DNA of 64,000 nt from Oculina patagonica (GCF_052425735.1 NC_135762.1:27900001-27964000), one strand, 5' to 3'; counted from the first letter of the stretch, positions 3,795 through 61,000 are shown. Made by a program: numbers and translations. The notes: a model not told the origin generated them from the letters alone.

Positions 3795-5454
3795 CTAAAA
3801 TAAAGGTCCTTTGAAATTGGTCAAAAAACAACAAACACTCCACACCTGATTTACAGATCCTCCTAAGACTAGAGGTTGGACTCTGTCAAAAAAATGATAT
3901 TCTTTGACTCGTCTTATAGCTCTCTCAACGTGTATTCGAAGTCTTGCAATTTCTTGGGTGTTGGAGACCTCTGATGATGTAAACTGTTTATTCCCAACTT
4001 TAGAACAACTTTTACTTTTGCCTAAGAATGGAGGAATTGCAAGTTTTACATTTACTTTGTTGAGAAGGTCATCGATCAAAAACCCCTTGTCTGCCATAAC
4101 TTCAGTTCCTTCTTCCAGCAAGTCCAGAATTCCACTTTGACGAGTTATTTCTTTGTCTGATATGCTTCCTTGAAACAAAGAACTCACAAAAGAGACTGCT
4201 CCATTTGGGGATATCCCGACAAGGCCTTTATATGTGGTGTGGGACTTATAAGAAGAATAAAACTCAGAATTTAAAACCTTAGAACTTGGGGTCTGAACCT
4301 TTATCTCTGTACAGTCCAAGATCACACAAGTATGTGGGTATGTTGCTCTAAAACAATCCGGTAGGTTTGCCCGCACCTGGGCTTTTGAGGGCCAGATGGG
4401 TACCTGACCAAGCATGAAATAAAGAAAATTAGCCCATGTCAAAAATACTCTACTAACAGTACTGGGACTGACTTTAAACCTTACAGCCAAGTCCTCAATA
4501 GGAAAACCTTGCTTAATTCTGACTAGAAATAAAAAGAACTGATCAAACAATGGTAGGGTACACTTGGTGCTGGTTTCAACGCCTTCTTTTCTTTTGTAAT
4601 CCACTGGCGATTGACCACTGCGCTGCACTTGGGACCATGTTGCCATGTTCTTAGCATAAGGCTGAAGCCAATTGAATACTGATTTTAAAAGTTCATAAGA
4701 ACCGAATCCTGTGTAGAACTTTATCTGTTCCGGACCTTTTGAAAATCTTTCCAATCCAAACTTTTCCAACGACAAAACGGCAACTTGTTCCTCGAGTTCT
4801 GCAATTTGTTCCTCCAGTTGTGCTATACGATTCTTCAACTGTTCTTCAGCGGTTGGTTCTGAGTTTACCGAACTGCCTTCCAACTTACTGGCTTCTTCAT
4901 CACTGGATGCATTCTTCTCAAACCGAAGTTTTTTACGTCGTTGGAACACATTCTCTGGTCGCTGCTGTGTTGTTTTGGTCCATGCAAAAACTGACGGCAC
5001 TGCTTGATCCCTTAACCGCTTCCTTCCAGCCAACGTGGTTTGAATTTCATCTGTTTTAAAATGCTCTGAGCAAACCAACGTGGAGTCTTTTTGTATCTGT
5101 AAACAATCGCCGATCGATCTAATGTTAAATTGATTGTTTATACTGTGAAAAACTCCACAAAGGAAACTAATCATAATTACATAATTCACTATTGCTGCAA
5201 AAATCAACGTTTATTGAGCTTATGTTTAGGTCTTAGTCAAGCAAAGTCAAGAACAGCGATCGATCGTAAACAACCTATTTATGCACGATTTTTACCTTGA
5301 ACAAAGGGCCTTCATCACGTCGTATGGCAATTATCCAAGCCTTTCTTAGCTGTCCATCCTTCGGGAAATTAAAAAACTTCAAATTTTTTCCGGTAGCAGA
5401 TGATTTACGTTGGTCGTTGTTACACAAAGGAACACAACAATGATAGTGCGCCAT
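3795..5454 (-). CDS. ISL2EU transposase, THAP + coiled coil + HTH + DDE (DDE_Tnp_4-like); exons 5454-5296, 5096-3795 (~486 aa)
   Basis: Exon 1 MAHYHCCVPLC...FPKD...W..AIRR joins VCSEHF to form the THAP domain. Catalytic triad in ILDCTE, MADKGF and RIHVERAI. Confidence 0.92.
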
Positions 5455-8400: not shown

Positions 8401-10206
8401 AAACAAATGTTTTGTGCACAAATGCTCTGCCATACATTCGAAAAAAATGATGATTTCTGTCAGGGACAATGCACTCTTCCTGACGCTTTCTAGCCTTTTT
8501 TTTTTATAAGGAGAAAGGCCAGAGTGAGATCTTTGCAATCGTAATCCTGAAAACATTGCACCCAACTCTTTTCTTGCGGTTTTGACACATAATGTCTGCA
8601 TAATATGACACTTTCGATATATTAAAATTCACCTTCGCAGCATGCCCTGGAGGACACAAACAAAAGGAATTTTGCAAGTTTATTTATTCTTTTGTTTTTC
8701 TCCTCCAGGCCTTGCTGTCAAGATGAATTTTAACATATCGAAAGTAGCCTATCTGGGACAAAATACAAAAAGGGAATCCTGGCTTACAATATTACCTCAC
8801 AACATAGTTGAAAGACAAACTGCTAATTTTATAAATCGCGCGATCACAATGCCCGATGACTTCATCGCTTAAAAACCAGTCAATTATTTCACGCTTGTTA
8901 GGGATGAATGAACAGCAAGAACCATTGAGTAAATTCCTTTTTCAAAAATACGAAGAAACTTTTTTAAGGGGGCACCGCCCACACCCTCTTGTACGTCCAA
9001 GGGTTAATCTGACAGAGATAATAAATGAATCTTTTCTTTTACCAAGGTTCCTGCAGTTGTCGTTTTGTTTTCCAAGGTTTCATTTACATATTTTAATTTG
9101 TGCTTTCGTGTTTGCCTTTCAGTGGTGTAGACTGATGTTGTGTTTATTTTAATTTAGTTTTATATCTTCCAAACGATATTATCGCAGACGCACAGGCTTC
9201 ATCGCTTAAGTAAACCGTCGCAATGTTATATTGATTTATTTCGATCAGTGTTACTGCTAGCAGATCAGTCACCCAACCTTGAATAAATATTTAATTGCCG
9301 ACGATTAAAGTGTCATTCCTTTCTCATTATAAAAATAGTAAGCGAGGGGTCGAGAAAACCTTATACAAACGGCGATCTACATTTTTTTTTTCAAATATTT
9401 AATTGTGAGCACATAAGCAGTGCCAAACGCAAAGATCGTCCCTTGAACAAAACGGGAAGAATACATGCTCTTTCAAAAGGCTTTTTCGTTTTCTTCGTTA
9501 GCTTGAAACTATTCATATTAATTATCATTGACATAAAGAAAGTGTACTTTAAATGAGTTTAACAAAATCCATCAATCTTGCAATTTTAAGTGCAGCCCAG
9601 GCTTTTCAATCTTGCTAGGTTGCGAACACTTGGTGACATAGTTCAGTCAGCGGCTTTACCGGTAAAACAGGCGGTTCTATATGTTCTATATTTATATACC
9701 AGGTTTATGTGTATACCGTATTAGTTTTTTTGTTTACACAATGACAAGCAGAGGGAACTTTACCTGTTGCTGTTATGTTTGCCAAGGCAATTAACATCAA
9801 AATTGCCATGAAAATTTGTGAATCAATCGCCATAACGTACAGAATGAGAATGAAACTGAATCACGATCACTCTTCAGTCCTTTCTCGTGTCCGATGGAGC
9901 CGTAACATACGATAGACAAACGCAACTCACATGATGAATAAGAGGGAATCTATTCAATGGCGGAAGTGTCGTTTTGCGTAATTACAGTTCTATAAAAAGG
10001 ACAACCACCTTTTTACTAAATTTAAGTTGGTTACGTCAACTTGCATCCTTTTGTTCCCAAACAAATGCTTTGTGCACAAATGCTCTGCGATACTTTCGAA
10101 AGAATTAATGATTTCTGTTAGGGGTGAATTGTACTCTTCCTTACGCTCTCTGCCTTTTTTGTTTATCAGGGAAAAGAGCAGAGTAAGATGTTTTTCAAAA
10201 ACTCAT

Positions 10207-15947: not shown

Positions 15948-16099
15948 CAGGGACGGCGGAGCAATTTTCCAAGTGGGGGGGCTGACTAGTGACTTGAAGT
16001 GGGGGGGGCTTAAAATACTTTTCTCTTAGTAAGTCTTTATTTTTCGGAAATTCTGGGGGGGATAAAGCCCCTCCAGCCCCCCCGGCTCCGCCGTGCCTG
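15948..16099. mobile_element. Short MITE
   Basis: TIR CAGG(G/C)ACGGCGGAGC; TTACT on both flanks. Confidence 0.65.
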
Positions 16100-17406
16100 T
16101 TACTGCATGACAAAGATATATAACTTCTCTTGAAATAATCAACAAGTTTTGAAATCAAAACATCTAGAAATTATATTCTTTCAAGGTTAATGCCAATCTA
16201 CGAAGAATATCAAATATTTGATATCTGATAAAATATGACTACTTCCTTGCTTTATGCGCCGGGTCACCTGGAGACCTGAAAATTAAAGTTAGGGAATTAC
16301 TTTTGTGTTTCTTTCCCTGTGCGCAAACAATAGTATGGTTTTTGTTTTTCAGTTTTAAAAGCTAACGTGAAGCTGCAAAAACTATCACGAGCATAAACTC
16401 ATTCCTTGTCGTTTTGTGCTGGCGTTCATTTCTCCGCGTTCAACGATCGAAAAAATACAACAATTGAGGGCTGTGAACAGTCTATAACTGCCTTGCGTTA
16501 CATCTGTCACTGATTTGCATCTATAGGGCAACCAGTTACCTCTACGTTGTTTTGAAGATGCCAAAATATTGTGGCGCACTTTGCTATCGAAAATCGTAAA
16601 ACTCGCTGCAGCCCACGTTAACCTCTTCGACAAAGTTAGAACCATTTCGCTTTACTGGAAACAAGTCAACATAAGCCAAACAATTGAGATAGAAATACAC
16701 TACTGAAATTAAAATTAATTTATCGGAATTTTTGCTTACATTCGGTTGACAGCAAAACAGATCTTAATCTTTTGATAATCAAATATTTCACCTCTTTTAA
16801 AACTCTTAGATGATCATATAAGTCTCTAACAAAATCAGGTTTTCTTGATTGCTTTCAAGGTGAAACAAATACTACCTTTCCAATGAATGATTTCGCGAAT
16901 AACTTGCATGAAGATATGAAATAGTCAAAATAAAGAGAAAGTCAAAATTGAATACAAGCGATGTGGGTTTTTGTGGTCTTCCTATATATCGAATTAATTT
17001 GCCTATTCATTTATTTCATCATATTCAGGTCTTTTCGAAATTTAATATTATGACGACTTTCAGGTTTCGTCAATGTAGCCAGCTCAAGCAAATATCAAAA
17101 CAGAAAACTCAGTAAAAGCTTTACGTTATTTTCTTTCACTCCTGCTCTTTTGTCTCAAGAAAAGCAAGAAAGTTAGAAGGCACTTTAACTTTCATTTTTA
17201 TTCTTTTTGTGTAGCAAACATGAAAGAAACATGATACAAATTAATTTTTTGTAAACTCAAATATTATAAACAGTCTTGCATTATTCAGTTGTGGTTATTC
17301 GTAGCTCGTTTACTTCACGTCAAGCAATAATCTTTCAATTGTAACAAATTTGTTATCCACAAGTTGCATCTTCGAACACTTTTTCCTGTTCCTGTTCTTT
17401 GTAACT

Positions 17407-40600: not shown

Positions 40601-42224
40601 CCCTATGGAGCCAACTGCATTGAGGACAACATAGCTTCGAAAGCAAATTTCTGGGGCTATCCAATTTCCAATAACCTGAGCTTCTATGCGTGTCCAGAAC
40701 ATTACTGTCAAAGTCCAGCTTCTAATTCAAAAGAGTACAACAGTTGTCATGGAAACAGAGCGGGTTTTCTCTGTGGAAAGTGTGCTCCAGGAGTATAGTG
40801 AAACTATGTTTTCTACTGAATGCCGCAAAAGTACTGAATGCAACAACCATATGCTATGGATAATAACAATCTTGTTGTCAACTGGATTTACCCTTTATCT
40901 TTTGAGTAAACCACCGATTTTGAGTTTGCTTGGAAGGCAAATTTTATGGTTTAGAAAAACGGAAAACGCCTGCGTCATACAAGACTTAGGTCACGCCTAT
41001 CAACACTCGGACCGTGGGTACCTAAAAATTACATTTTATTTCTATCAAGCAGCCGAACTACTGATTGTCGGCTCCACGGAACATTTACTCCGAAAGATTC
41101 CGTTTATTTTCAGCGTGTTTGCTGCTTTTAATTTTCAAGTAAGAACTCTAAACAGAGCGATAGACTGCCCTCTTGCAGGACTTACTGCAGTTTCCAAGGC
41201 GTTGCTACTTTCTGTTACAGTTTTCCTCACAATGGCCGAAGTTGTAGTTATATACTGCCTGAACTTTGTTTTTAACAAGATACGACGAAAAGAAGGACCG
41301 TCTCTGATCCATTACATTGCTGTTTTCATAGAGTTACTGCTGTTAGGTTACGAGCGGCTTGCAGAGACGGCGCTCAAGCTCTTGCACTGTGTCCCTATTG
41401 GCTCCAAAAATCGGCTGTTTATCTATGGGGAAGTTCTTTGTTGGCAATGGTGGCAGTACATTCTACTTGCTTACATTGTAGTATTTGTGGTTCCTTTTAT
41501 TATTGTACTTTATTGTGGTTCTTCCATGCTCTATAAAGCCTCCATTTCTGTGTGGGAGTTTCTTGGAGCTTGCATACTTCCACTGCCCTTCCTCATTTAC
41601 TGGTTTTTGAAGAGGTTTCTGCAAAAAAGGGAAAACAATTCTGTGAACACACAGGCTAACAACAAAGATGTTTTAGAAATACTGCATGGTCCCTTTCGTA
41701 AACCAAACTCTGAAGATACAGGAACGCTCTACTGGGAGAGCATTTTGATTGGTCGACGGTTCGCACTGCTTGCTTGTCTTGCCTTCATTACAGACTCAAT
41801 GTTCCGAATGGTTTGTATGACTATTGCCTGTGTTCTCATTTTACTCCATCACATACTGAAGAATCCTTATCACGATCCGATCGCCAACAAAGCTGAAACG
41901 TTCTCTCTCCTGACCTTAGTCATTATGGCAATTATTAACCTTACAAAAGCAACTCTCATCTCGTTTGGAACAAGCATTGATGGTCCAACCAAGCCTTATT
42001 TGGAAACTCTGGAGTGGGCAGAGGTCTGTGCTTTGGCGTTTGTCCCAACAATGCTGTCTATTTTTGTTGTTTTTGCCATTTTCTCTCAGATGGTACGATT
42101 ACTTATTTCTCTGGCAATGAAAATATACTGTTGCTTGCAGTGGCATCCATATCGAATATCGTTTTATTTCGCAAGACATCAGGAAAGACCTCTTCTGGAT
42201 ATTTCCGAAGGAGACGGATCTTAA
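37663..42224 (+). pseudogene. Disrupted gene for a large membrane protein: parallel beta-helix-like ectodomain, Cys-rich region, multi-pass (~7) TM domain
   Basis: YVSKTGDDSESCG...PCKTIGQA N-cap motif, repeated NCSF.N / F..N.A..GGA turns, C..CPPGFYS, CPYGANC, C.GNR.G.LCG.C..GYS, then a hydrophobic C-terminus. The reading frame shifts at least six times, and there is an in-frame TAA at 37858. The 5' end is uncertain. Confidence 0.75.
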
Positions 42225-52099: not shown

Positions 52100-55000
52100 T
52101 TAATTTCCGGGGTAGGGCGGTGGTGGCTCTCCAACATAAGAAGAATGTGCTGTTTCAAGTTGTACTTGCAGAGGCGTTGTGCATTCTGGGAAAGCGGTCA
52201 TTGAGAATTGTGGGTAAAATTCTAGCTGCTGGGGAGGTACTCGGGCAGACTGCTGCTCGTTCGGTATGGCAACTGTTATTGCTGTTGGCTGATCCGGGCG
52301 ATGTGTCCCAAAAATGTATTTGCGATCTTTGCAGCACAAAACTAAAAAGATAAGCCCGCCAATGACGAAGATTGCGAGGAAAAAGAAGCCAACAAATGTG
52401 CTCGCGTTGAAGGCTAAAAATAAAAACGATAAAAGAATAAAACTAATAATTAGATAATCGTATAAACGAACGAATGAATGAATGAACGAATGAATGAATG
52501 AATGAAGGAAGGAAGGAAGGAAGGAAGGAAGGAAGGAAGGAAGGAAGGAAGGAAGGAAGGAAGGATCGTTTCCCTTAAATCTTGTTCCTTTACAAAAATA
52601 TTTACAGTTTAAAAAAGAAGTTTTGAATAAATCAGTTGAACTTCCACATCAAACTGGAAGTTTTCATGGAAACTGGCAGTGCGGCAAAGAAGATGACTGG
52701 AAGAGTTTCCCTGTAATGGCGGAAACGACGGATTTCGCGGATTTCGCGGAAATTTTCAGATTAAAAAATAAAAAAAAATAAAAATAATAAAAATAAAAAA
52801 TAAAAAAATAAAAAATACATTTTTTATTTTTTTTATTTTTAATATTGATATATTCAACTATTATACTTACAGTTTTAAAGAGAAGAATTAAATTAAATCT
52901 AAAAATTTCCGCGAAATCCGCGAAATCCGTCGTTTCCGCCATTATTGGGAAACTCTTTCAGTCAACTGCTTCGTAGTACTGCAAGTTTCCATGAAAACTT
53001 CCAGTGCTGCAAAGCAGTTGACTGAAAGAGTTTCCCAATAATGGCGGAAACGACGGATTTCGCGGATTTCGCGGAAATTTTTAGATTTAATTTAATTCTT
53101 CTCTTTAAAACTGTAAGTATAATAGTTGAATATATCAATATTAAAAATAAAAAAAAAAAATAAAAAATATTTTTTATTTTTTTTATTTTTTATTTTTATT
53201 TTTTTATTTTTTTTTTATTTTTTAATCTGAAAATTTCCGCGAAATCCGCGAAATCCGTCGTTTCCGCCATTATAGGGAAACTCTTCCAGTCAGCCGCTTT
53301 GCAACACTCCCAGTTTCCATGAAAACGTTCAGAGCTGCAAAGCCCTTTCTTACTATCTTTTCTCCTTCAATGTGAAAATGAAAATTGTTTTTTATAGTTT
53401 TATGTATGGTGTATTTTTAACATAAGTCGTGAAAATTTTGTGATACATCACGAACATATATGCACCGTAGTAGATGATCTTTGACTCAAACATTTTTCAT
53501 TCTTATTGCGGCTTCGTTATCAAGTTAACTGTTAACTGGTGCGAAATGGCTGTCGATTGTCAGGTCAACAGATTGGCTGATCAGTGCAAATAATCGCGAC
53601 ATTAAATTCATGAAACTACTGTGGCGAAACAATTCGTCTAGAAACTCTCTGAAAAGCATTTTGGAATTGATGAAGTGACACAATTGGCTATTAAAAAATG
53701 TCGCTATGGCTTCGTTATCGGCTTGATTTTAGTGTAAAAATAGCTGCTAATTACTAGGTTATGTAATGATCTGCTGATCAACGCAAATAATCGCGATATT
53801 AAATTCATGGAAATACTGTGGCGAAAAAATTCGTCTAGAAAACACTCTGGAAAGCATTTGGGAACTGATAGAGTGACACAATTGGTCATTTAAAAGCGTC
53901 ACTGTGGCTTCGTTATTGACTTGATTGTTAGTGTAAAAAAAGCTGTAAATTACCAGGTTAGGCGATGATCTGCTGATCAGTGGAAATAATAGCGACATTA
54001 AATTCTTTCAAGTAATCTGGTCCCTACTGAGTTCATTTTTTGGCTATAATTATTCCCGGGGAATTAGCAAGTCTGCTCTCTATAAAAGCAGAACACGTTT
54101 AAAGGCATAAATCAGTCCAAGATGCAGAGCTCGAGAGCACGTTTCCCTGCGAGACAGCTAAACAGTCGAACAATTAAGAGCGCGGCGTTGTGCTATTTAA
54201 GCCCAGTGGTTTTGGGAAAGTGTAGCATTACAAGTGCGAAGTGCGTCTGCAGAGTTCAAGAGAGTGGTTTTCAGGACGCTTGGAATAGCGTGTGCCGAAC
54301 TAGAGATGCCTGTGATAGCGCACTACGAGGTTAGTTTCTGATATTGCGATTTTAAACTTGTTCAGTGTCTCTTGGGTGAGATAACCAGAAGCAGATCATT
54401 CGGTAATAATTTTTTGCTTTGTCTATTTCGCAGGCATGAAGAATGTAGCGTTCTTTTTTAGTGCCATTAGTACGCAAAAGTTGAAGAAACAGCGAGATAA
54501 GAAGAAATCAAATGATCATGACGAGAATGAAGATAGCGATGATGCGGACGAATATCCAGAATTAAGTCAGTTAGCGAGTTCAACGAGCCAACAATGGGCC
54601 GAAAGTCACGCATCAATTATAAACCACAAGCTTTGCCCAGCTGTGAGCTACTGGATCGCGTCGACAACGCCCAACGGTGCTCCACGTAGCCCCCTTGGTA
54701 TCCATCGTGTTCTCTTGGAGTGCAACGTGGACGTATTTATAAATCAGGTAACAAAAATAACATGTTTATTCACATTCGTACCAATCGCATTAGCTTCACT
54801 AGCCGGATGATAAAAAGTAGTTACTAGCTTATATGAAGGCAGTGAATCAAGCAGTGAAAATGTGACAATTCAAAGGACCATTCCAATCATCGAAATTAGT
54901 TTTGCCTTGAATTTACGCTACGTCGGGCTCCCTTAAAACTTGACAGTACTCGGAACGACGAATCACTTGTTAGGACTAGGTCAAAGTTGCTCACCACCTT

Positions 55001-58000
55001 AGAACTTTAATTAACTGGCAACTGTTCTGAATTTTAGGTCGCTTGTCACGAAGGGAAAGAAAGTGGCGCAATGAAAGAGCTTTTTAAAGTCCTTAAAGAC
55101 CACAACAACACCTTCATGGTGGAGTTGGTGAATTCGTCTTACAAATATTGCTTTCGAGATGAATTTGAAAGTGTCCTGGGTGAGGCCGATTCAATAGATG
55201 TTGACGAATGTGGTACCGAGAACGTGGTCAGAATTTGTCTAGTCGATCCCTCGTTCCATTCCAGTCTTTCGGTGGCGTTGGGAAAACTCCAAATTGCAAA
55301 GTTGGTCATCGAGCACTTCGGATTCCACGTAGACGGCTCGGATATTCAGACAGGAAACGAACCGGTCGTTGAAAAGGCAAGATTATCTGATAAACTCACA
55401 GTGCTTGTGAACGATATTGGCATCGCCATGGAAAAGCTCGGGTACGCTCTCTATGCTGGAAAGATCTACAAAAAGTGTGAAAAGGCAAGGTACACCTATT
55501 GGTATAAGTGCGAAGTTGAGGCGTTTGTTAATAGCTTGGCGGCCAATCGATCTTTCAAAGCCAGACTACTTAAGGACATGAAGAAAGTCATCGAAATCCT
55601 AGCCAACCCACATTGCGAAGTCATTCGACCTCTTTGCGTGGACTACGATTTGATTGAGGTGAACGAAGGCCAGTGCTGGTCAATCAAGGAGCGACGTTTC
55701 TTGGAAAATGCGATCAAAGACAAGGACATCGGTCATGTTACACCCCGAGCGTTTTCGCCATACGATCCAACCAAAGTTCCGGATCCAAAATATTTCAGAG
55801 AGATCTTAGAGAACAGCCTAACGGAAGCCGAAGTTGGGGAGTTCTGCGAGGATTTCATCAGGCTTCTACATCACAACCAGAAACGACACAAAGACAAAGT
55901 ACCATGTCTGATTGGCGCTGCGAACAGCGGTAAAACGAGTTTATTTCAACCGATCTTAGGACTCGTACATCACAGCAACATAGCGACTATCACGAAGCAG
56001 CGCGTGTTCAATAAGGCCATGATTAATCGCTTTACAGAAGTGATTTTCATTGACGAAGCCAGTCCCTCAACCTTAGACATCGACGATTGGAAAATCCTTA
56101 CCCAAGGCGGATTTACGGCATGCGACGTAAAGTACCAAACGGCAAAGAGCTTCATTAACCGTTGTCCAATGCTTTTGACCGCCCAGACGAAGCTTGAATT
56201 TAAGGCCGATGACCAACCCGCCATGGATCGAAGGTTGAAGAACTACACCTTCAAGAGTCTGCCCAACCCGAGAAAGAAAGCGACAGAGTGGCTTAGGAGA
56301 CACCCCATGGAGTGTGTTGCGTGGGCGGCTACGAAGGCGCGTCCACCTAGTGACCAAGAAGAGAGCTCGGACAACGGTGAAGACGAACAAGAGCCAGAAA
56401 TCGGCGATGGCGTCCTTAAAGCCGAAGAGAAGGATGCTCTGCGGACGCTGTCACTCTTGGAGGAGAGCTGTGAAGATGATTCGCTAGAAGAGACGAACGA
56501 AGCGGTCAGTGCAATGGAAGAAAGCAACGGCGAACCGGACACCTTGCAAGACCACCTCAGTCAGCTTCAGCCGGGCAGTCTTAGACACAGGCAAATGGCC
56601 CACATTCTGGAAACAGAGAAGGAGAAGCAGAAACAGATAGACCAGTTTTACCGGACGAGAGATGTCGAGAGGTATGAAGATGTTCAGACGGCGGTAGATC
56701 AGGATGAGGCACGAGGCGAAGCTGCGAGAAAAGCGTTCGAGGGCAGTTGGTTGAGAGACACCGAAATTGAACTCAAAGAGTGTTGCGATAAATATCAAGC
56801 TACGCAAGACTCTTTCGTGCGCTCGAATGTGAAGGCGTGGATGGAGGTTCTGTGCGAGAAGCTGAAAGCTCACCACCAAGCCCTGGGCACCTTTAACACC
56901 ATCGAGGCCATAGAGGAGCGAAAGAAGGTGTGTACAGCACTCGGCCTGCTCAGGAAAGAAGATCATCGTCTGGTGACAAGTGTGGCGGAGCGACTCCCGG
57001 TACTAACTCGCCCAAGTGCAGATGCAGACGAAATTGTTGCACAACAGGATGTAAGCGATGAAAGCAGTCAAGAACGGAGGCTTTTCATCACTCCAGTGCC
57101 CAGTACTAGTCGTAGGCCGTTACGCCAACACGACGACTGCGCGGTGTCCGAAGCACTGCTCCGAGCAAGTTCTACCTTAAAGCGGAAGAGAGGTTCCAGC
57201 AGTCAGCGCGGAAGAGAGCAACAAAGAAACACCATAACAAAGTATCTCTCGAGCACGCAACATGAGTGAACGCAGTCTGACGATCAGAGAACGGAGAAGA
57301 GTAGCGACGACGAGATGTTGTTTGTCAGTATTGTAGTTCTAAGTTACATGTTAAGCGACGTGCCACGATTACGACAGGCGAGATATAGAATTCATGTATA
57401 CAGACAGAGAGATATAGAACATTGCTCGCTACCAGGAGTGTCACAAAAAGTTCTTTCTGTTGTTGTTACAAAAGAGTGTACTTGTCAAGTCAAGAAATTT
57501 ATTTAATGATGTAGTAATTTATTACTGTATTCTTTATTGCACAGTCACGATTAAATGCCTTTCTTGCTTAACACAAGTTTGAAATGTCATTGCTGTCCTT
57601 GCCTTGGTAATTAAACTAGCTGCATTTTCATTCCAGCCCTTTTCTTGAGAGAGTCCGCCGTTCTTCCGTCTTGAAATTTGAAATCGGGATCTCTCAAAAT
57701 TGCCGTCCACTGTCCAAACCCGTACCTTTTTAAACCTTTCTTGAGAAAATTGTCCTCTTCTTCCGTGAATTTCAACACCCGTCGATGATTTCGTTGAATT
57801 TGCAATTGTTTTTTGGGAGGGGAGTCCCTTTCAGAAGAGGCGCTCATTGATTCTGCTGTTCCGACCGATTCTGAAATTGTTGAAGTTGTAGCGCTAAACC
57901 TCGTGTGCACTTCCTTATCCAAATCTGAGCCTTTCGTTCCTTGTAGCTTTTGCAGACACTCGTGAGCTTTCACAGCAACTTCGCGCGATCTCTGCTTTTG

Positions 58001-61000
58001 ATAGTGAACTTTTGCAACGGCAGAACTGTGTTTTTGGTCTTCTGACAAAATTTGTTGCTCCGTGCTTGTGAGTAGATTGAGGCTTTGCGTTTCGACAATT
58101 TGACGATAGCGCGTTGGATGAATATACTTCCCGATTGCATCGAACACCAATTTACTCATGACGTCGCCCAATTTGCTATGCTGGCCTCCGTTTCTAGTGA
58201 CAAGTACGAAGTCGCACTGGGGTTTGAGTAATGGCCTTACGAAATTGATGTAGCTTTCCAGCACCCGCATGCTTGCATCAGTCAAAATTAATGAGTCAAA
58301 TCCATACTTGCTGGCCGTTTTGAACTTTTTCTGGTCAATGAATCCTCCGTTCGCCTTAGCTGTTTTAACCATGTCCACCGTCAAGTACTGATAAGTCATA
58401 GGGCGAGATCCCTTCACCTTTATGAATAAATACACGGCGACAAATTTCGTGGCAAATGTTAGGTCCAAAGGATTCACTTGACCCGGAATAGTTTTGCAAG
58501 TCTTTACCGTGTTTTCGTAACGAGGCAAATGAAATGTCACCACTTCTAACAGTTCTTCCATGGTTGCCCAGTGCCCTCTAGCATCCAAAGTCTCAATGTC
58601 TAGATCTTGTGTCCACTGCAATCTCATCATCTTTGCCACGGTTTTGCGCGCTCGTTTGAGGTACAGCTCCGTTGAGGACAAATTTCGAAGAACTGTGTCT
58701 GATGCGCCATTTATCTTTCTGAAGTCGATTAATTCGGAAATCGCATCAATGTAGCCCAATCGGCCACCGTGTCCGAGTTTGCATTCATCTTGCAGGTAGT
58801 CGATAAACTTGAACAACAAACAATGCGAACACAGGCTAAAATCCAGCACTTCAAAACTCAATTCCTCTTCATCTTCGCAGCAAAATTTGAGAAATTTGAA
58901 ACACCTCTTGACTATCTGCTGGGCTACACGATCTTTCTTGCAACCCCCACCACTTCCCGTCAACCACTTCACAAACGATTCGCCAATTTTGCTGGAAACT
59001 GAAAATGAAGGCAAAACTCTGGCAGTTTGTACTGTGATTTCACTCGATTTAACATCACTGGCGCCTTCTCTTTCGTATGCAGCGAGTATTCCCAGATCAG
59101 GTTTCTCGTCAAAGTAAAAGAACCAACTGTGCTTGGTATTCACATGTTTTCTGCACCCTCTCTGACTTTGAAAGCCATCATGGTCACACACTTGTATTGG
59201 GCAATGATACAATCGGTCGGTTTCATTCTTTTCCAGGTGAAGCCGTTTTGGTTTGGGCGATGCTCCATCGATATTTGACCAATTGATTTTACACTTCTTG
59301 CTCATTTTATCATCAAGGTAAAATGGTCAACACAATCTCCTAGAACTGAATTTCTTTTCCAAAAAAATACGACGCACCAATTACACCTTAAGGAACTTCA
59401 TTCGTGTTTAAACTTGGCAAGGCGCGCCTCTTCTTGCCTGCCCTCATTACTATTGTGCAAAATTCATGACACCCAAGATTGTGCTCAGCTTGCCCAAGCA
59501 GGTCTATGCGCGCCCCATTGTTTTTCTTCATTTCAATGGACAATATAATTTAGGAACAAAATGGTCAAGTAAGCGCAAGGAATTCGGAACCAAAGAGTCC
59601 TGAATTTGTTCCTAAATGAGCAGTTTAGGAACAATACGTTCCATTTACAAACAGGAACTCGGAACAAAACGGTCTCAAATTATCAATTTGGGAACAAATC
59701 GTTCCATTCACAGTTAAGAACTCGGAACAAAACGGTCCTAAATTATCAATTTGGGAACAAATCGTTCCATTCACAGTTAAGAACTCGGAACAAAACGGTC
59801 CTAAATTATCAATTTGGGAACAACGCGTCCCATTTACAGATAGGAACTCGGAACAAAACGGTCCTAAATTATCAATTTGGGAACAACGCGTCCCATTTAC
59901 AGATAGGAACTCGGAACAAAGCAGTCCTAAATTATCAATTTGGGAACAATATGTTCCATCAACAGTTGGGAACTCGGAACGAAATGTTCCTGTTTTATCT
60001 TAGGGTGAACGTTTTGTTCCTAACTTTATAAAAAGCTGGTCCTCTTAAGGTTAACAGGAACACAAATATGAGGAACAAATTATATTAGAGGAACGTTCCT
60101 AAAGAAAAGATCGGAACATGCTACAGAACTTAAAATCAGTTAAAAACGGGCAAAGATATAAATTACAAGTCACAAAACAGTTAGTTGAGCGTTTAGGTAA
60201 AATGAAAGCAATCATCGAAACTTGGTAAACTCTACCGCACTCAAAGGCTGTAAAACACGCAGTGAAAATTTTTGGGAAACGTTAAGGAAGGAAGGAAGGA
60301 AGAAGGGATGGATGGATGGATAGATGGATGAATGATAAATGAATGAATGAATGAATAATGGTAGACTTTTCTGACCGTAGAAAAAGGCATCAAGGCAACT
60401 GAATGGAATTAATTGCGATAAACTGAAATCAGTAGATCTCGGAACGGTAGTCTGAATATTAAATAGTTTTCTGTTGTTTTATCTTTTTTCTTGTTTGACT
60501 GTACTTGTGTGTGATTTTTTTTATTTCTTTGCCTCTTGGACTATCTGTTTATCTTCTTGCTATTAATACTTAGAAGATCTAGGAGAAATAACCCTACAGA
60601 TACATTGAAAGTATTTAGATAAAAAACTGATAACCTAACACAAGCAAAGCTCAATGCAAGTTACCTTCGACTTCTTGTAAGAGGGATAACAATACTAGGA
60701 AATAAAACAAAAAATTTACAGATGCATTGTGGCTCAAAACATTAACTAAAAAATTAAGGTCGAAAAAAAAAAAAAACAACACTGGTTCATCAGCCATTAA
60801 ACCATGTCGACTGTTCACCCGTGAGCTCTCACTAAACTAATTAGTTTAAAAATCCTAAGCTGAATCTCTTTGACAAAATAAAATCAATCATTAACGCAAC
60901 TGTATGGGTTGCAGCTAAGTGTGTCATGGTAATATTATTAGTATGGATAATCAAATGGTGACGAGTGAAATTAGGAAATAATTTTACGCGCGTTTTGTCC

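Follow-up and report, generated by a model that had tools for sequence, protein, structure and literature searches.

Crypton DNA transposons were reportedly described by Goodwin in 2003. They are tyrosine-recombinase (YR) DNA transposons, were also treated by Kojima and Jurka in 2011 (PMC3212892), have been modelled as moving by recombination at a short identity between terminus and target (PMC9977147, PMC3212892), and have been observed to be active in Chlamydomonas (PMC9977147). Cryptons are described as devoid of terminal inverted repeats, and as possessing only terminal direct repeats of 4-6 bp (PMC3212892). Enzymes of the same superfamily are also found in viral settings: endogenous nimaviruses, with viral genomes of 280-400 kb, encode tyrosine recombinases that are tied to telomere repeats (PMC10871703), and Polinton-like viruses harbor a module that consists of a helicase and a tyrosine recombinase (PMC11131425, PMC5499653).

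The locus described here lies within a window of 64,000 nucleotides from Oculina patagonica (GCF_052425735.1, NC_135762.1:27900001-27964000). One open reading frame in that window is probably the recombinase gene of an abundant Crypton-like DNA element with two genes, found in stony corals, which is equipped with terminal arms, a helicase gene and GGAAC iterons, and which is proposed to move as a circle; no description of this element was found in the searchable literature. Like Cryptons, it is a eukaryotic DNA element with a tyrosine recombinase as its sole integration enzyme, without a reverse transcriptase or a target-site duplication, that appears to integrate at short sequences resembling its own terminus, and that gains copies even though its mechanism is nominally conservative. 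Unlike Cryptons, it displays inverted arms of 10-15 bp that form a lox-like site, possesses a gene for an SF3-helicase-like protein as well as an iteron block, bears a TRF-like Myb repeat at the C-terminus of its recombinase, and prefers microsatellites. The GCR1_C domain carried by some Cryptons was not detected in the coral recombinase, and none of 26 aligned members of its family matches Pfam DUF3504 at E<=1.

The recombinase and its active site

The recombinase gene, noticed at positions 57611..59305 in a preliminary description of this DNA, lies on the minus strand as an intact reading frame of 564 amino acids, from ATG to stop. Annotated O. patagonica proteins are 99% identical to its product. 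Homologues of the recombinase number more than 958 (1718 cluster representatives at 50% identity), and the conservation described below refers to an alignment (A1) of 26 diverse full-length homologues that extends down to approximately 35-36% identity. The protein consists, in order, of a C2H2-like finger, a helical core-binding region, a YR catalytic domain, a Ser/Thr-rich linker and a TRF-like Myb repeat.

Membership of the tyrosine recombinase superfamily, which the preliminary description had also proposed, is supported by the predicted fold and by invariant residues in canonical order. A Foldseek search with the AlphaFold model (pLDDT 79) recovered XerA, Xer, XerD, lambda Int, Cre and TelA with probabilities of up to 1.0, the top match being XerA (5hxy; probability 1.0, E=2e-3), and further paired the model with viral integrases and VLF-1. 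The catalytic domain (approximately residues 280-445; 57971..58468, minus strand) contains a candidate active site composed of R301, K329, R399/R401, H426 and Y435; R301, K329, R401, H426 and Y435 are invariant in the 26 homologues, down to approximately 35% identity, and their order and spacing correspond to the R-K-(H)xxR-H-Y pattern, from which, rather than from superposition, the probable roles of these residues are assigned. Libraries of sequence families were silent: no member of the 26 matches Pfam Phage_integrase at E<=1 (one matches Phage_int_SAM_1 at 0.005), a PHROGs search and a PDB profile search gave no tyrosine-recombinase match for the family, and hhalign comparisons with single sequences of Cre and lambda Int were likewise negative. 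The preliminary description had HPTRYR replacing the HxxR box. The box is indeed atypical: H396 varies, conservation of R399 reaches only approximately 90%, and it is R401 that is the invariant arginine, with T398 three residues ahead of it, so that the histidine of the box is ambiguous. It is nevertheless not simply replaced, HPTR being literally an HxxR.

The predicted N-terminal finger (residues 35-59; 59129..59203, minus strand) was also borne out, in that each of its ligands (C35, C40, H54 and H59) is at least 90% conserved across the 26 homologues. It is modelled with a pLDDT of 82-89, and its Pfam support is scant, zinc-finger models yielding a weak match in just one of the 26 members.

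A TRF-type Myb repeat at the C-terminus

Following a disordered linker (residues 473-509), the protein ends in a single TRF-type Myb repeat (residues 512-560; 57626..57772, minus strand), recognized through Pfam and through PDB sequence and structure matches; the C-terminal sequence quoted in the preliminary description is present, and its likeness to telomere-repeat binding factors was upheld. Pfam Myb_DNA-binding scores 28.5 bits over residues 512-556 (E=1.6e-6; gathering cut-off 24.4 bits), the Myb domains of TRF1 and TRF2 rank best in a PDB sequence search, and a family-profile search gives E=5e-7 for TRF1 versus approximately 2e-3 for c-Myb. The AlphaFold tail superimposes on human TRF1 (1w0t) with a TM score of 0.86, an rmsd of 1.8 Å and 36% identity, and a single Myb of three helices, the third of them long, is likewise found in TRF1, TRF2 and fish Terfa (TM 0.78-0.86, 36-38% identity). 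Relative to TRF1 and TRF2, the coral repeat has a loop between helices 2 and 3 that is three residues longer, no TRFH dimerisation domain accompanies it, and the telobox LKDRWR of TRF1 reads LKKRAG, a change that had been pointed out earlier and that is seen in the alignment with TRF1; A557 is nearly invariant where TRF has a tryptophan. The positions aligned to K421, D422 and R425 of TRF1, which we take to be the base-contacting residues in TRF1-DNA structures, are occupied by K, K and G, and differ considerably among family members. Residues F513, E517, D518, W533, F544, R548 and R556 are invariant in the 26 homologues, all of which keep the repeat (24 of them matching Pfam Myb_DNA-binding), and the YR-Myb fusion persists down to approximately 36% identity.

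Accessory DNA-binding modules are found in other recombination systems of mobile elements, such as the arm-binding domain of lambda Int and the Harbinger Myb-like protein. A second module that acts on subterminal repeats, apart from the crossover site, would suit the GGAAC block of the coral element; the coral module differs from those precedents in being C-terminal, of TRF type, and borne on a flexible linker of 40-200 residues.

Element structure and the partner gene

From the structure of its copies alone, we infer that the element is mobile. It spans positions 52565-60282 (7.7 kb) and contains two genes, that of the recombinase and a convergent SF3-helicase-like reading frame, and similarity to independent copies ends exactly at its two terminal arms. 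The 5' arm (60274..60282, minus strand) reads ACGTTTCCCAAAAATT in the sense of the recombinase and GGGAAACGT on the plus strand, and its motif is common to loci from 8 assemblies. The 3' arm (52565..52574, minus strand) reads ..GGGAAACGAT in that sense and ATCGTTTCCC on the plus strand, borders the left (AAGG)n tract on its inner side and is inverted relative to the 5' arm, the two termini being CGTTTCCCAAAATTT and AAATTTTGGGAAACG.

A 5' subterminal region (59500..60250) is marked by its density of GGAAC/GTTCC, with 31 motifs, or 31.8/kb, against 1.5/kb in the rest of the window. Within it lie six tandem units of 63 bp (59610-59991; 63 bp x 6.1 copies in a TRF repeat search), each containing TTTGGGAAC, which resembles the terminal arm and which occurs 7 times against 0.9 expected. 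In every subfamily the GGAAC iterons show a 10-30-fold enrichment, though the repeat units differ. They are also kept in a lineage whose Myb helix 3 carries other residues, so that a different module may read them.

The partner gene (55071..57269, plus strand; 732 residues) encodes an SF3-helicase-like P-loop protein, in which a Walker A motif (GAANSGKT) and the sequence VIFIDEA are invariant. The helicase family matches Pfam DUF5906, Parvo_NS1 and PPV_E1_C weakly, mostly under their cut-offs, and the best Foldseek matches of a low-confidence model (pLDDT 55) are to SF3 helicases and D5 primase-helicases. The convergent pair recurs at ten further loci (L007, L011-L015, L019 and L022-L024), is degraded in L002-L006, and is conserved in lineages whose helicases are 38-50% identical to that of the window. 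Two conserved reading frames only are found within the defined termini of the units, which measure 7-8.5 kb.

The pairing raises the possibility that the unit represents the module for replication and integration of a small DNA virus of the integrating, Polinton-like type, which would have lost its capsid genes and now be an integrating episome, with the iterons as the replication origin of its helicase. This origin, which would be compatible with the Crypton-like explanation as far as the integration step is concerned, is judged unlikely though far from negligible. In Polinton-like viruses a DNA helicase typically accompanies a tyrosine recombinase (PMC11131425), the same two functions. Foldseek links both coral proteins to giant viruses, the helicase through SF3/D5 helicases and the recombinase through integrases, the iteron block appears to resemble viral origins, and copy number has been gained with tandem arrays. 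However, the coral units possess no capsid or other conserved reading frame, lacking the capsid, packaging ATPase and protease genes of Polinton-like viruses at a size of only 7-8.5 kb; no recognizable primase or origin-binding domain was found in the N-terminal region of the helicase; and short derivatives without the helicase (L001 and L017), in which the recombinase gene is intact, nevertheless form arrays. Of similarly limited probability is a related proposal, in which the element would be a capsid-less, plasmid-like integrating replicon of animals, whose helicase replicates the circle from the GGAAC block and whose Myb repeat and C2H2 finger bridge that block to C/T-rich microsatellites. 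If that were true, simple repeats would constitute genome-wide, orientation-defined landing pads, and the element would parallel, in eukaryotes, the integrative plasmids of bacteria, its recombinase having a target range set by a short spacer and a modular reader.

Joined ends and a proposed mechanism

In the loxP and FRT sites, the recombinase binds two inverted arms that flank an asymmetric spacer of 8 bp, which sets the orientation. Copies of the coral element occur singly or as head-to-tail arrays, and where they are joined head to tail their arms (..GGGAAACG / CGTTTCCC..; 8-15 bp) flank an 8-bp asymmetric, C/T-rich spacer, in the same layout as the sites of Cre and Flp. The joined site reads GGGAAACG-ATCTTCTA-CGTTTCCC in L004 and L006, and the same arms surround the spacers ATCTTATA in L017 and ATCCCATA in L019; tandem junctions of this arm-spacer-arm type are present in L002, L004, L006, L017, L019 and L022, and no intact joined site lies within the window. 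In contrast to the Cre/loxP and Flp/FRT systems, the coral element naturally targets degenerate C/T-rich repeats instead of another copy of its site, and the coral recombinase carries two extra predicted DNA-binding modules.

Under the Crypton-like explanation, the element would excise as a circle, which would then re-integrate through a conservative, site-specific recombination event across the spacer; neither a circle nor an excision footprint was observed. Microsatellites rich in C/T would supply many registers of pseudo-sites that resemble the pyrimidine-rich spacer and the adjacent TTTCCC half-arm, and would be favoured because of those many registers, which would also explain the fixed orientation of insertion. 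The Myb repeat, on its long flexible linker, would serve as an accessory DNA-binding module, most likely assembling or anchoring the recombination complex on the repeated motifs of the element or on flanking DNA rather than reading one particular microsatellite. The helicase, in turn, may replicate the circular form.

Insertion sites

Compound microsatellites adjoin the element on both sides, with (GAAT/GAAC)n followed by (GAAG)n on the left (52468..52564) and (AAGG)n followed by (GGAT)n and (GAAT)n on the right (60283..60360). The (AAGG)n repeat and the 63-bp unit of the preliminary description are both real, the former standing exactly at both boundaries of the element. Its claim of microsatellite insertion is supported by a survey of 32 solo element ends from 8 coral assemblies: a microsatellite adjoins 22 of the 32, against 2.7% of random 60-mers, and 21 of these 22 are C/T-rich on the recombinase-sense strand, corresponding to a single orientation. 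Endogenous nimaviruses, compared here by description, also insert specifically in simple repeats such as (TAACC)n and may form concatemers (PMC10871703), but their recombinases, for which a Myb domain is not reported, target one repeat type. In L005, approximately 110 bp of the same imperfect repeat block lies on both sides of the element, which simple conservative recombination does not predict.

The earlier proposal that a TRF-like Myb, retuned to GGAA/AAGG repeats, tethers the recombinase to microsatellites and thereby sets its target appears rather improbable. The strength and orientation-specificity of the microsatellite preference are in its favor, as are the suitability of a long flexible linker for tethering, the presence of GGAA within the iteron GGAAC, and the fact that (CCTT)n, equivalent to (AAGG)n, is the commonest flank (in the window, L017, L020, L021 and L022, and near L019); moreover, the alternative of spacer homology is without statistical support, the association between subfamily spacer and flanking repeat type being not significant (permutation p=0.16, 17 insertions). 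Against it, an identical protein, and an identical helix 3, are found beside CCTT, CTT, CCT, CTTT, ATCT, ATCC and AGTC repeats, most of which lack GGAA, as well as at two non-repeat sites, and the residues aligned to the base-contacting positions of TRF1 are those noted above for their variability. The identical protein P0004 sits in (TCTA)n, (TTTC)n and (ATCC)n. P0052 is likewise found within (CCT)n and a CT repeat of 10 bp, and two complete copies, L012 and L013, lie outside repeats; in these two no target-site duplication was found, and the near absence of spacer identity with the target counts against targeting through the spacer. The coral subfamilies examined all share one helix 3 (GRTADSLKKRAG), irrespective of the repeat beside them. 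A strict (AAGG)n reader fails because the same Myb also inserts at non-repeat sites, an outcome that the preliminary description had itself named as refuting. In a looser version of the proposal, the Myb may help to keep the enzyme at C/T-rich repeats or at the GGAAC motifs of the element itself.

Less probable still is that the Myb is a SANT/SLIDE-like chromatin module, binding nucleosomes or linker DNA nonspecifically, with the insertion bias arising from accessible or unusual chromatin. Sub-threshold matches to Pfam HTH_CHD1_Hrp3 (21 of 26 members) and SLIDE (11 of 26), along with CHD1 DNA-binding domains among the PDB matches, are consistent with such a role, but TRF1 and TRF2 outscore CHD1 by sequence profile and match by structure, the Myb domain and its N-terminal arm are net basic, and the strict orientation bias would be left unexplained. 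That the gene is instead an immobile, domesticated host gene, encoding a recombinase-derived DNA-binding factor like the Crypton-derived genes of vertebrates (PMC3212892), is extremely improbable. Its intact reading frame and its annotation as protein-coding in Oculina would suit such a gene, but near-identical copies are present in each genome by the hundreds, with defined termini, in tandem arrays and in a genomic context that differs from copy to copy, and the catalytic residues are invariant.

The recombinase and its Myb tail

The recombinase gene of the element (positions 57611-59305, minus strand) is an intact open reading frame of 564 amino acids; two proteins annotated in the stony coral Oculina patagonica match it at 99% identity. 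The G+C content of the window, about 38%, and its small number of long open reading frames are as expected of an animal genome; nine other reading frames of 186-512 amino acids lie between 1578 and 48827 (for example 3795-5207 and 40686-42224).

Among all of the searches conducted, the recombinase domain was detected only by comparison of folds. The AlphaFold model (mean pLDDT 79) displayed as its top Foldseek matches in the PDB, when searched whole, XerA, archaeal Xer, a staphylococcal integrase, YopR, XerD, lambda Int, TelA, XerH and Cre, and in a viral library the integrases of phage and giant viruses and the VLF-1 proteins of baculoviruses and nudiviruses. Sequence searches of the domain against Pfam (for the single protein and for each of 26 family members), PHROGs and the PDB (by phmmer and with the family profile) returned no match, as did hhalign comparisons of the family profile with Cre and lambda Int as single sequences. 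The residues R301, K329, R401, H426 and Y435 were found to be invariant among relatives down to 35% identity, in canonical order and spacing. The preliminary description held that HPTRYR replaces the HxxR box; HPTR formally corresponds to HxxR, although H396 varies and R399 is only approximately 90% conserved, and the invariant arginine is R401 (T398-x-x-R401).

The Myb-like tail noted in that description is present, at residues 512-556, where it exceeds the curated Pfam threshold (Myb_DNA-binding, E=1.6e-6). The top sequence matches of the single protein among solved structures were the Myb domains of TRF1, TRF2 and zebrafish Terfa, and a profile built from 26 diverse homologues matched TRF1 (E=5e-7), followed by CHD1 (8e-4) and c-Myb (2e-3). 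The modelled tail (pLDDT 85-91 for the Myb blocks) superimposed on human TRF1 (1w0t) with a TM-score of 0.86, an rmsd of 1.8 Å and 36% identity. The altered telobox was likewise evident in the TRF1 alignment, in which LKDRWR corresponds to LKKRAG in the recombinase, and the alanine at the tryptophan position is nearly invariant in the family. The linker preceding the Myb domain is flexible and ranges from 40 to more than 200 residues across the family; an N-terminal C2H2-like finger (C-x4-C-x13-H-x4-H) is conserved across homologues and was modelled with confidence.

Termini, joined sites and internal repeats

The similarity of other copies to the window ends at two exact points, 60282 and 52565, which gives a unit of 7.7 kb in the window. 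Read in the sense of the recombinase gene, the element starts with (A)CGTTTCCCAAA and ends with TTGGGAAACG(AT), and its termini form inverted arms of 10-15 base pairs. At head-to-tail junctions two such arms are separated by 8 nucleotides, an architecture that is also that of loxP and FRT; the spacer of the element is asymmetric and pyrimidine-rich. Among the 24 family-carrying loci that were fetched and compared with the window, L004 and L006, and likewise L002, contain the joined site GGGAAACG-ATCTTCTA-CGTTTCCC; the three tandem copies in L017 display the same arms around the spacer ATCTTATA; and the corresponding spacers in L019 and L022 are ATCCCATA and ATTCTCCA, the latter accompanied by a variant arm, CATTTCCC. 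All five spacers seen are pyrimidine-rich. In the rest of the 64-kb window the element does not recur, either whole or in part, and joined arm-spacer-arm sites are likewise absent.

An iteron block of 750 bp, located upstream of the recombinase gene, contains 31 GGAAC/GTTCC motifs and includes six 63-bp units, each of which carries an arm-like TTTGGGAAC. In every subfamily the density of GGAAC in this block is 23-44 per kb, versus 1.2-3.9 per kb elsewhere, and the enrichment extends to subfamilies with repeat units of 94 or 149 bp in place of 63 bp.

A further 2.5 kb of the element is non-conserved and includes a foldback and a tandem repeat. The foldback (52654-53343), nested in the non-coding 3' part, spans approximately 690 bp; its arms of 113-229 nucleotides, 85-90% complementary, surround A-rich and T-rich cores with CGGATTTCG repeats, and it resembles a nested MITE or foldback insertion. 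A segment of L022 (8226-8442) is approximately 69% similar to it. The 198-bp tandem repeat (53576-54005; 2.2 copies, 84% match) separates the foldback from the helicase gene, and other copies of the element have not conserved it.

Insertion at microsatellites

A single compound microsatellite surrounds the element in the window: on the plus strand, (GAAT)n(GAAG)n precedes the element and (AAGG)n(GGAT)n(GAAT)n follows it. Elsewhere, copies are flanked by (CTT)n (L001), (TCTA)n (L002 and L003), (ATCC)n (L004), (TTTC)n (L005 and L018), (CCT)n (L011, L014, L016, L023 and L024), a 10-bp CT repeat (L015), (CCTT)n or (CCCT)n (L017 and L019-L022) and, at one end in L023, (CAGT)n; the complete copies in L012 and L013 lie in ordinary non-repeat DNA, without target duplication. 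When an end was counted as lying in a microsatellite if its 60-bp flank matched itself over 75% or more at a period of at most 6, 22 of the 32 non-tandem ends qualified, versus 2.7% for 60-mers drawn at random from the same loci, and 21 of those 22 were C/T-rich on the recombinase-sense strand. The element thus has a robust preference with a robust polarity, though not an absolute preference.

The possibility that the microsatellites form part of the element was rejected, as the flanks differ among copies with identical recombinases and are absent from two complete copies. In L005, the element has on either side (8612-8721 and 15956-16100) an imperfect (TTTC)n block of about 110 bp that is interrupted identically in both places; this has the appearance of a long flank duplication, an outcome not predicted by conservative recombination.

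Choice of target

The preliminary description proposed that a telomere-type reader, retuned to (AAGG)n/GGAA, tethers the integrase to microsatellites. The fusion is real, as is the association with microsatellites; the attribution of targeting to a retuned telomere-type reader is not supported. The simplest alternative, supported only coarsely, is matching by the spacer: the asymmetric C/T-rich spacer and the adjoining TTTCCC half-arm would be partly matched at many points within C/T-rich tandem repeats, which would also explain the fixed orientation. Label permutation of subfamily spacers against their own flanks did not reach significance (p=0.16, 17 insertions), and spacer-directed targeting at a fine scale is therefore not claimed. 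Non-repeat targets have just 1-3 nucleotides in common with the junction.

Several observations argue against recognition of (AAGG)n by the Myb domain. An identical recombinase protein (P0004) is present in all of L002-L006, yet these are inserted in three repeat types, and a second (P0052) is encoded by all of L011-L016, including the two non-repeat insertions. Furthermore, helix 3 of the Myb domain (GRTADSLKKRAG) is identical in almost all coral copies examined, whatever their flank, with exceptions in L003 (GRVGDSLKKRAE) and L011 (GRTANSLKKRAG).

The GGAAC iterons of the element itself are an equally possible site of action for the Myb domain. These persist upstream of a divergent member with different helix-3 residues, and they may therefore be read instead by the finger, the recombinase core or the helicase. 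That member, from a marine metagenome (L009, 1-1141), lies directly downstream of a reading frame that by eye resembles a reverse transcriptase, and its upstream 500 bp contain GGAACC/GGGAACCAAT iterons. We conclude that the Myb domain is best regarded as a conserved accessory DNA-binding module on a flexible linker, and not as a demonstrated microsatellite reader.

The helicase-like partner gene

Convergent with the recombinase gene is a helicase-like reading frame (55071-57269; 732 amino acids) with invariant Walker A and B motifs. It displays weak Pfam matches to DUF5906, Parvo_NS1 and PPV_E1_C and no sequence match in the PDB; its top fold matches are SF3/D5 helicases, which are indicative only, given a poor AlphaFold model (pLDDT 55). 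The pair recurs in L007, L011-L015, L015b, L019 and L022-L024, with helicases 38-50% identical to that of the window; the pairing is degraded in L002-L006 and absent from short derivatives in L001 (9086-13804) and L017 (4045-8884). These derivatives, of 4.7-4.8 kb, retain an intact recombinase-Myb gene; that of L017 is present as three copies, head to tail, and that of L001 has a 3' 2.1 kb with no relation to the corresponding part of the window's copy and with a 750-bp inverted duplication of its own.

The Oculina annotation of the helicase gene (P0303, 917 amino acids) adds approximately 185 N-terminal residues from upstream exons (54300-55070). Nearly all homologues start with MKELF or only slightly ahead of it (only a small number of NCBI gene models have a longer form like that of P0303), and the extra exons may therefore be a gene-model artefact or a lineage-specific extension. 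A second helicase homologue, 41% identical, is located away from any recombinase gene in L002 (962-2263) and L006 (1071-2372), where it adjoins a non-LTR retrotransposon reading frame (Exo_endo_phos and RVT_1); elements of other kinds may carry members of the helicase family as well.

Relationship to known elements

Most of the eukaryotic mobile elements known to target repeats are retrotransposons. A recent addition is the giant endogenous nimaviruses, and the same behaviour is observed here in a compact DNA element of 7-8 kb. The recombinases of those viruses combine a C2H2 finger with a SAM-like domain and insert in (TAACC)n (PMC10871703); they represent the closest animal precedent for repeat-targeted tyrosine recombinases, and a finger of this kind is also found in the recombinase of the element. 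In Cryptons, the recombinase is the sole integration enzyme, acting without reverse transcriptase or target duplication at short terminus-like sites (PMC3212892, PMC9977147). The element is alike in all of these respects and differs in possessing inverted terminal arms and in that no DUF3504/Crypton-type sequence signature was detected; we classify it as Crypton-like by behaviour, a variant form of the tyrosine-recombinase DNA elements. It also has in common with Polinton-like viruses a helicase and recombinase pair, to which a role as replication-integration module has been ascribed (PMC11131425), although the unit described here is without capsid genes.

Searches of the literature (excluding Repbase and Dfam) returned no account of the element or of a recombinase-Myb fusion, and 'Crypton-H' appears in four papers as an annotation label only, without definition; so far as those searches show, this is the first tyrosine recombinase found fused to a Myb domain of the telomere-factor type. 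The readable ends of the element, its lox-like site and its mere two genes render the rules of target choice directly testable. Should either the spacer or the Myb domain prove to set the target, the element would represent natural modular targeting in the tyrosine-recombinase class.

Distribution and recent activity

The recombinase family comprises more than 958 matches in a database clustered at 90%, individual coral assemblies contributing many of them, and clustering at 50% leaves 1718 representatives. The element is abundant in reef-building corals, where copies are 98-99% identical with intact reading frames; this abundance and apparent recency make it relevant to coral genome dynamics and to the instability of microsatellite markers. 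Another copy from Oculina aligns with the window over 2.3 kb, including the recombinase gene, at 98.4% identity and, as both reading frames in the window are intact, recent activity is likely. Ends and targets were determined in stony corals; the contigs of divergent members are short metagenome pieces, and one such member is labelled as a cyanobacterial MAG.
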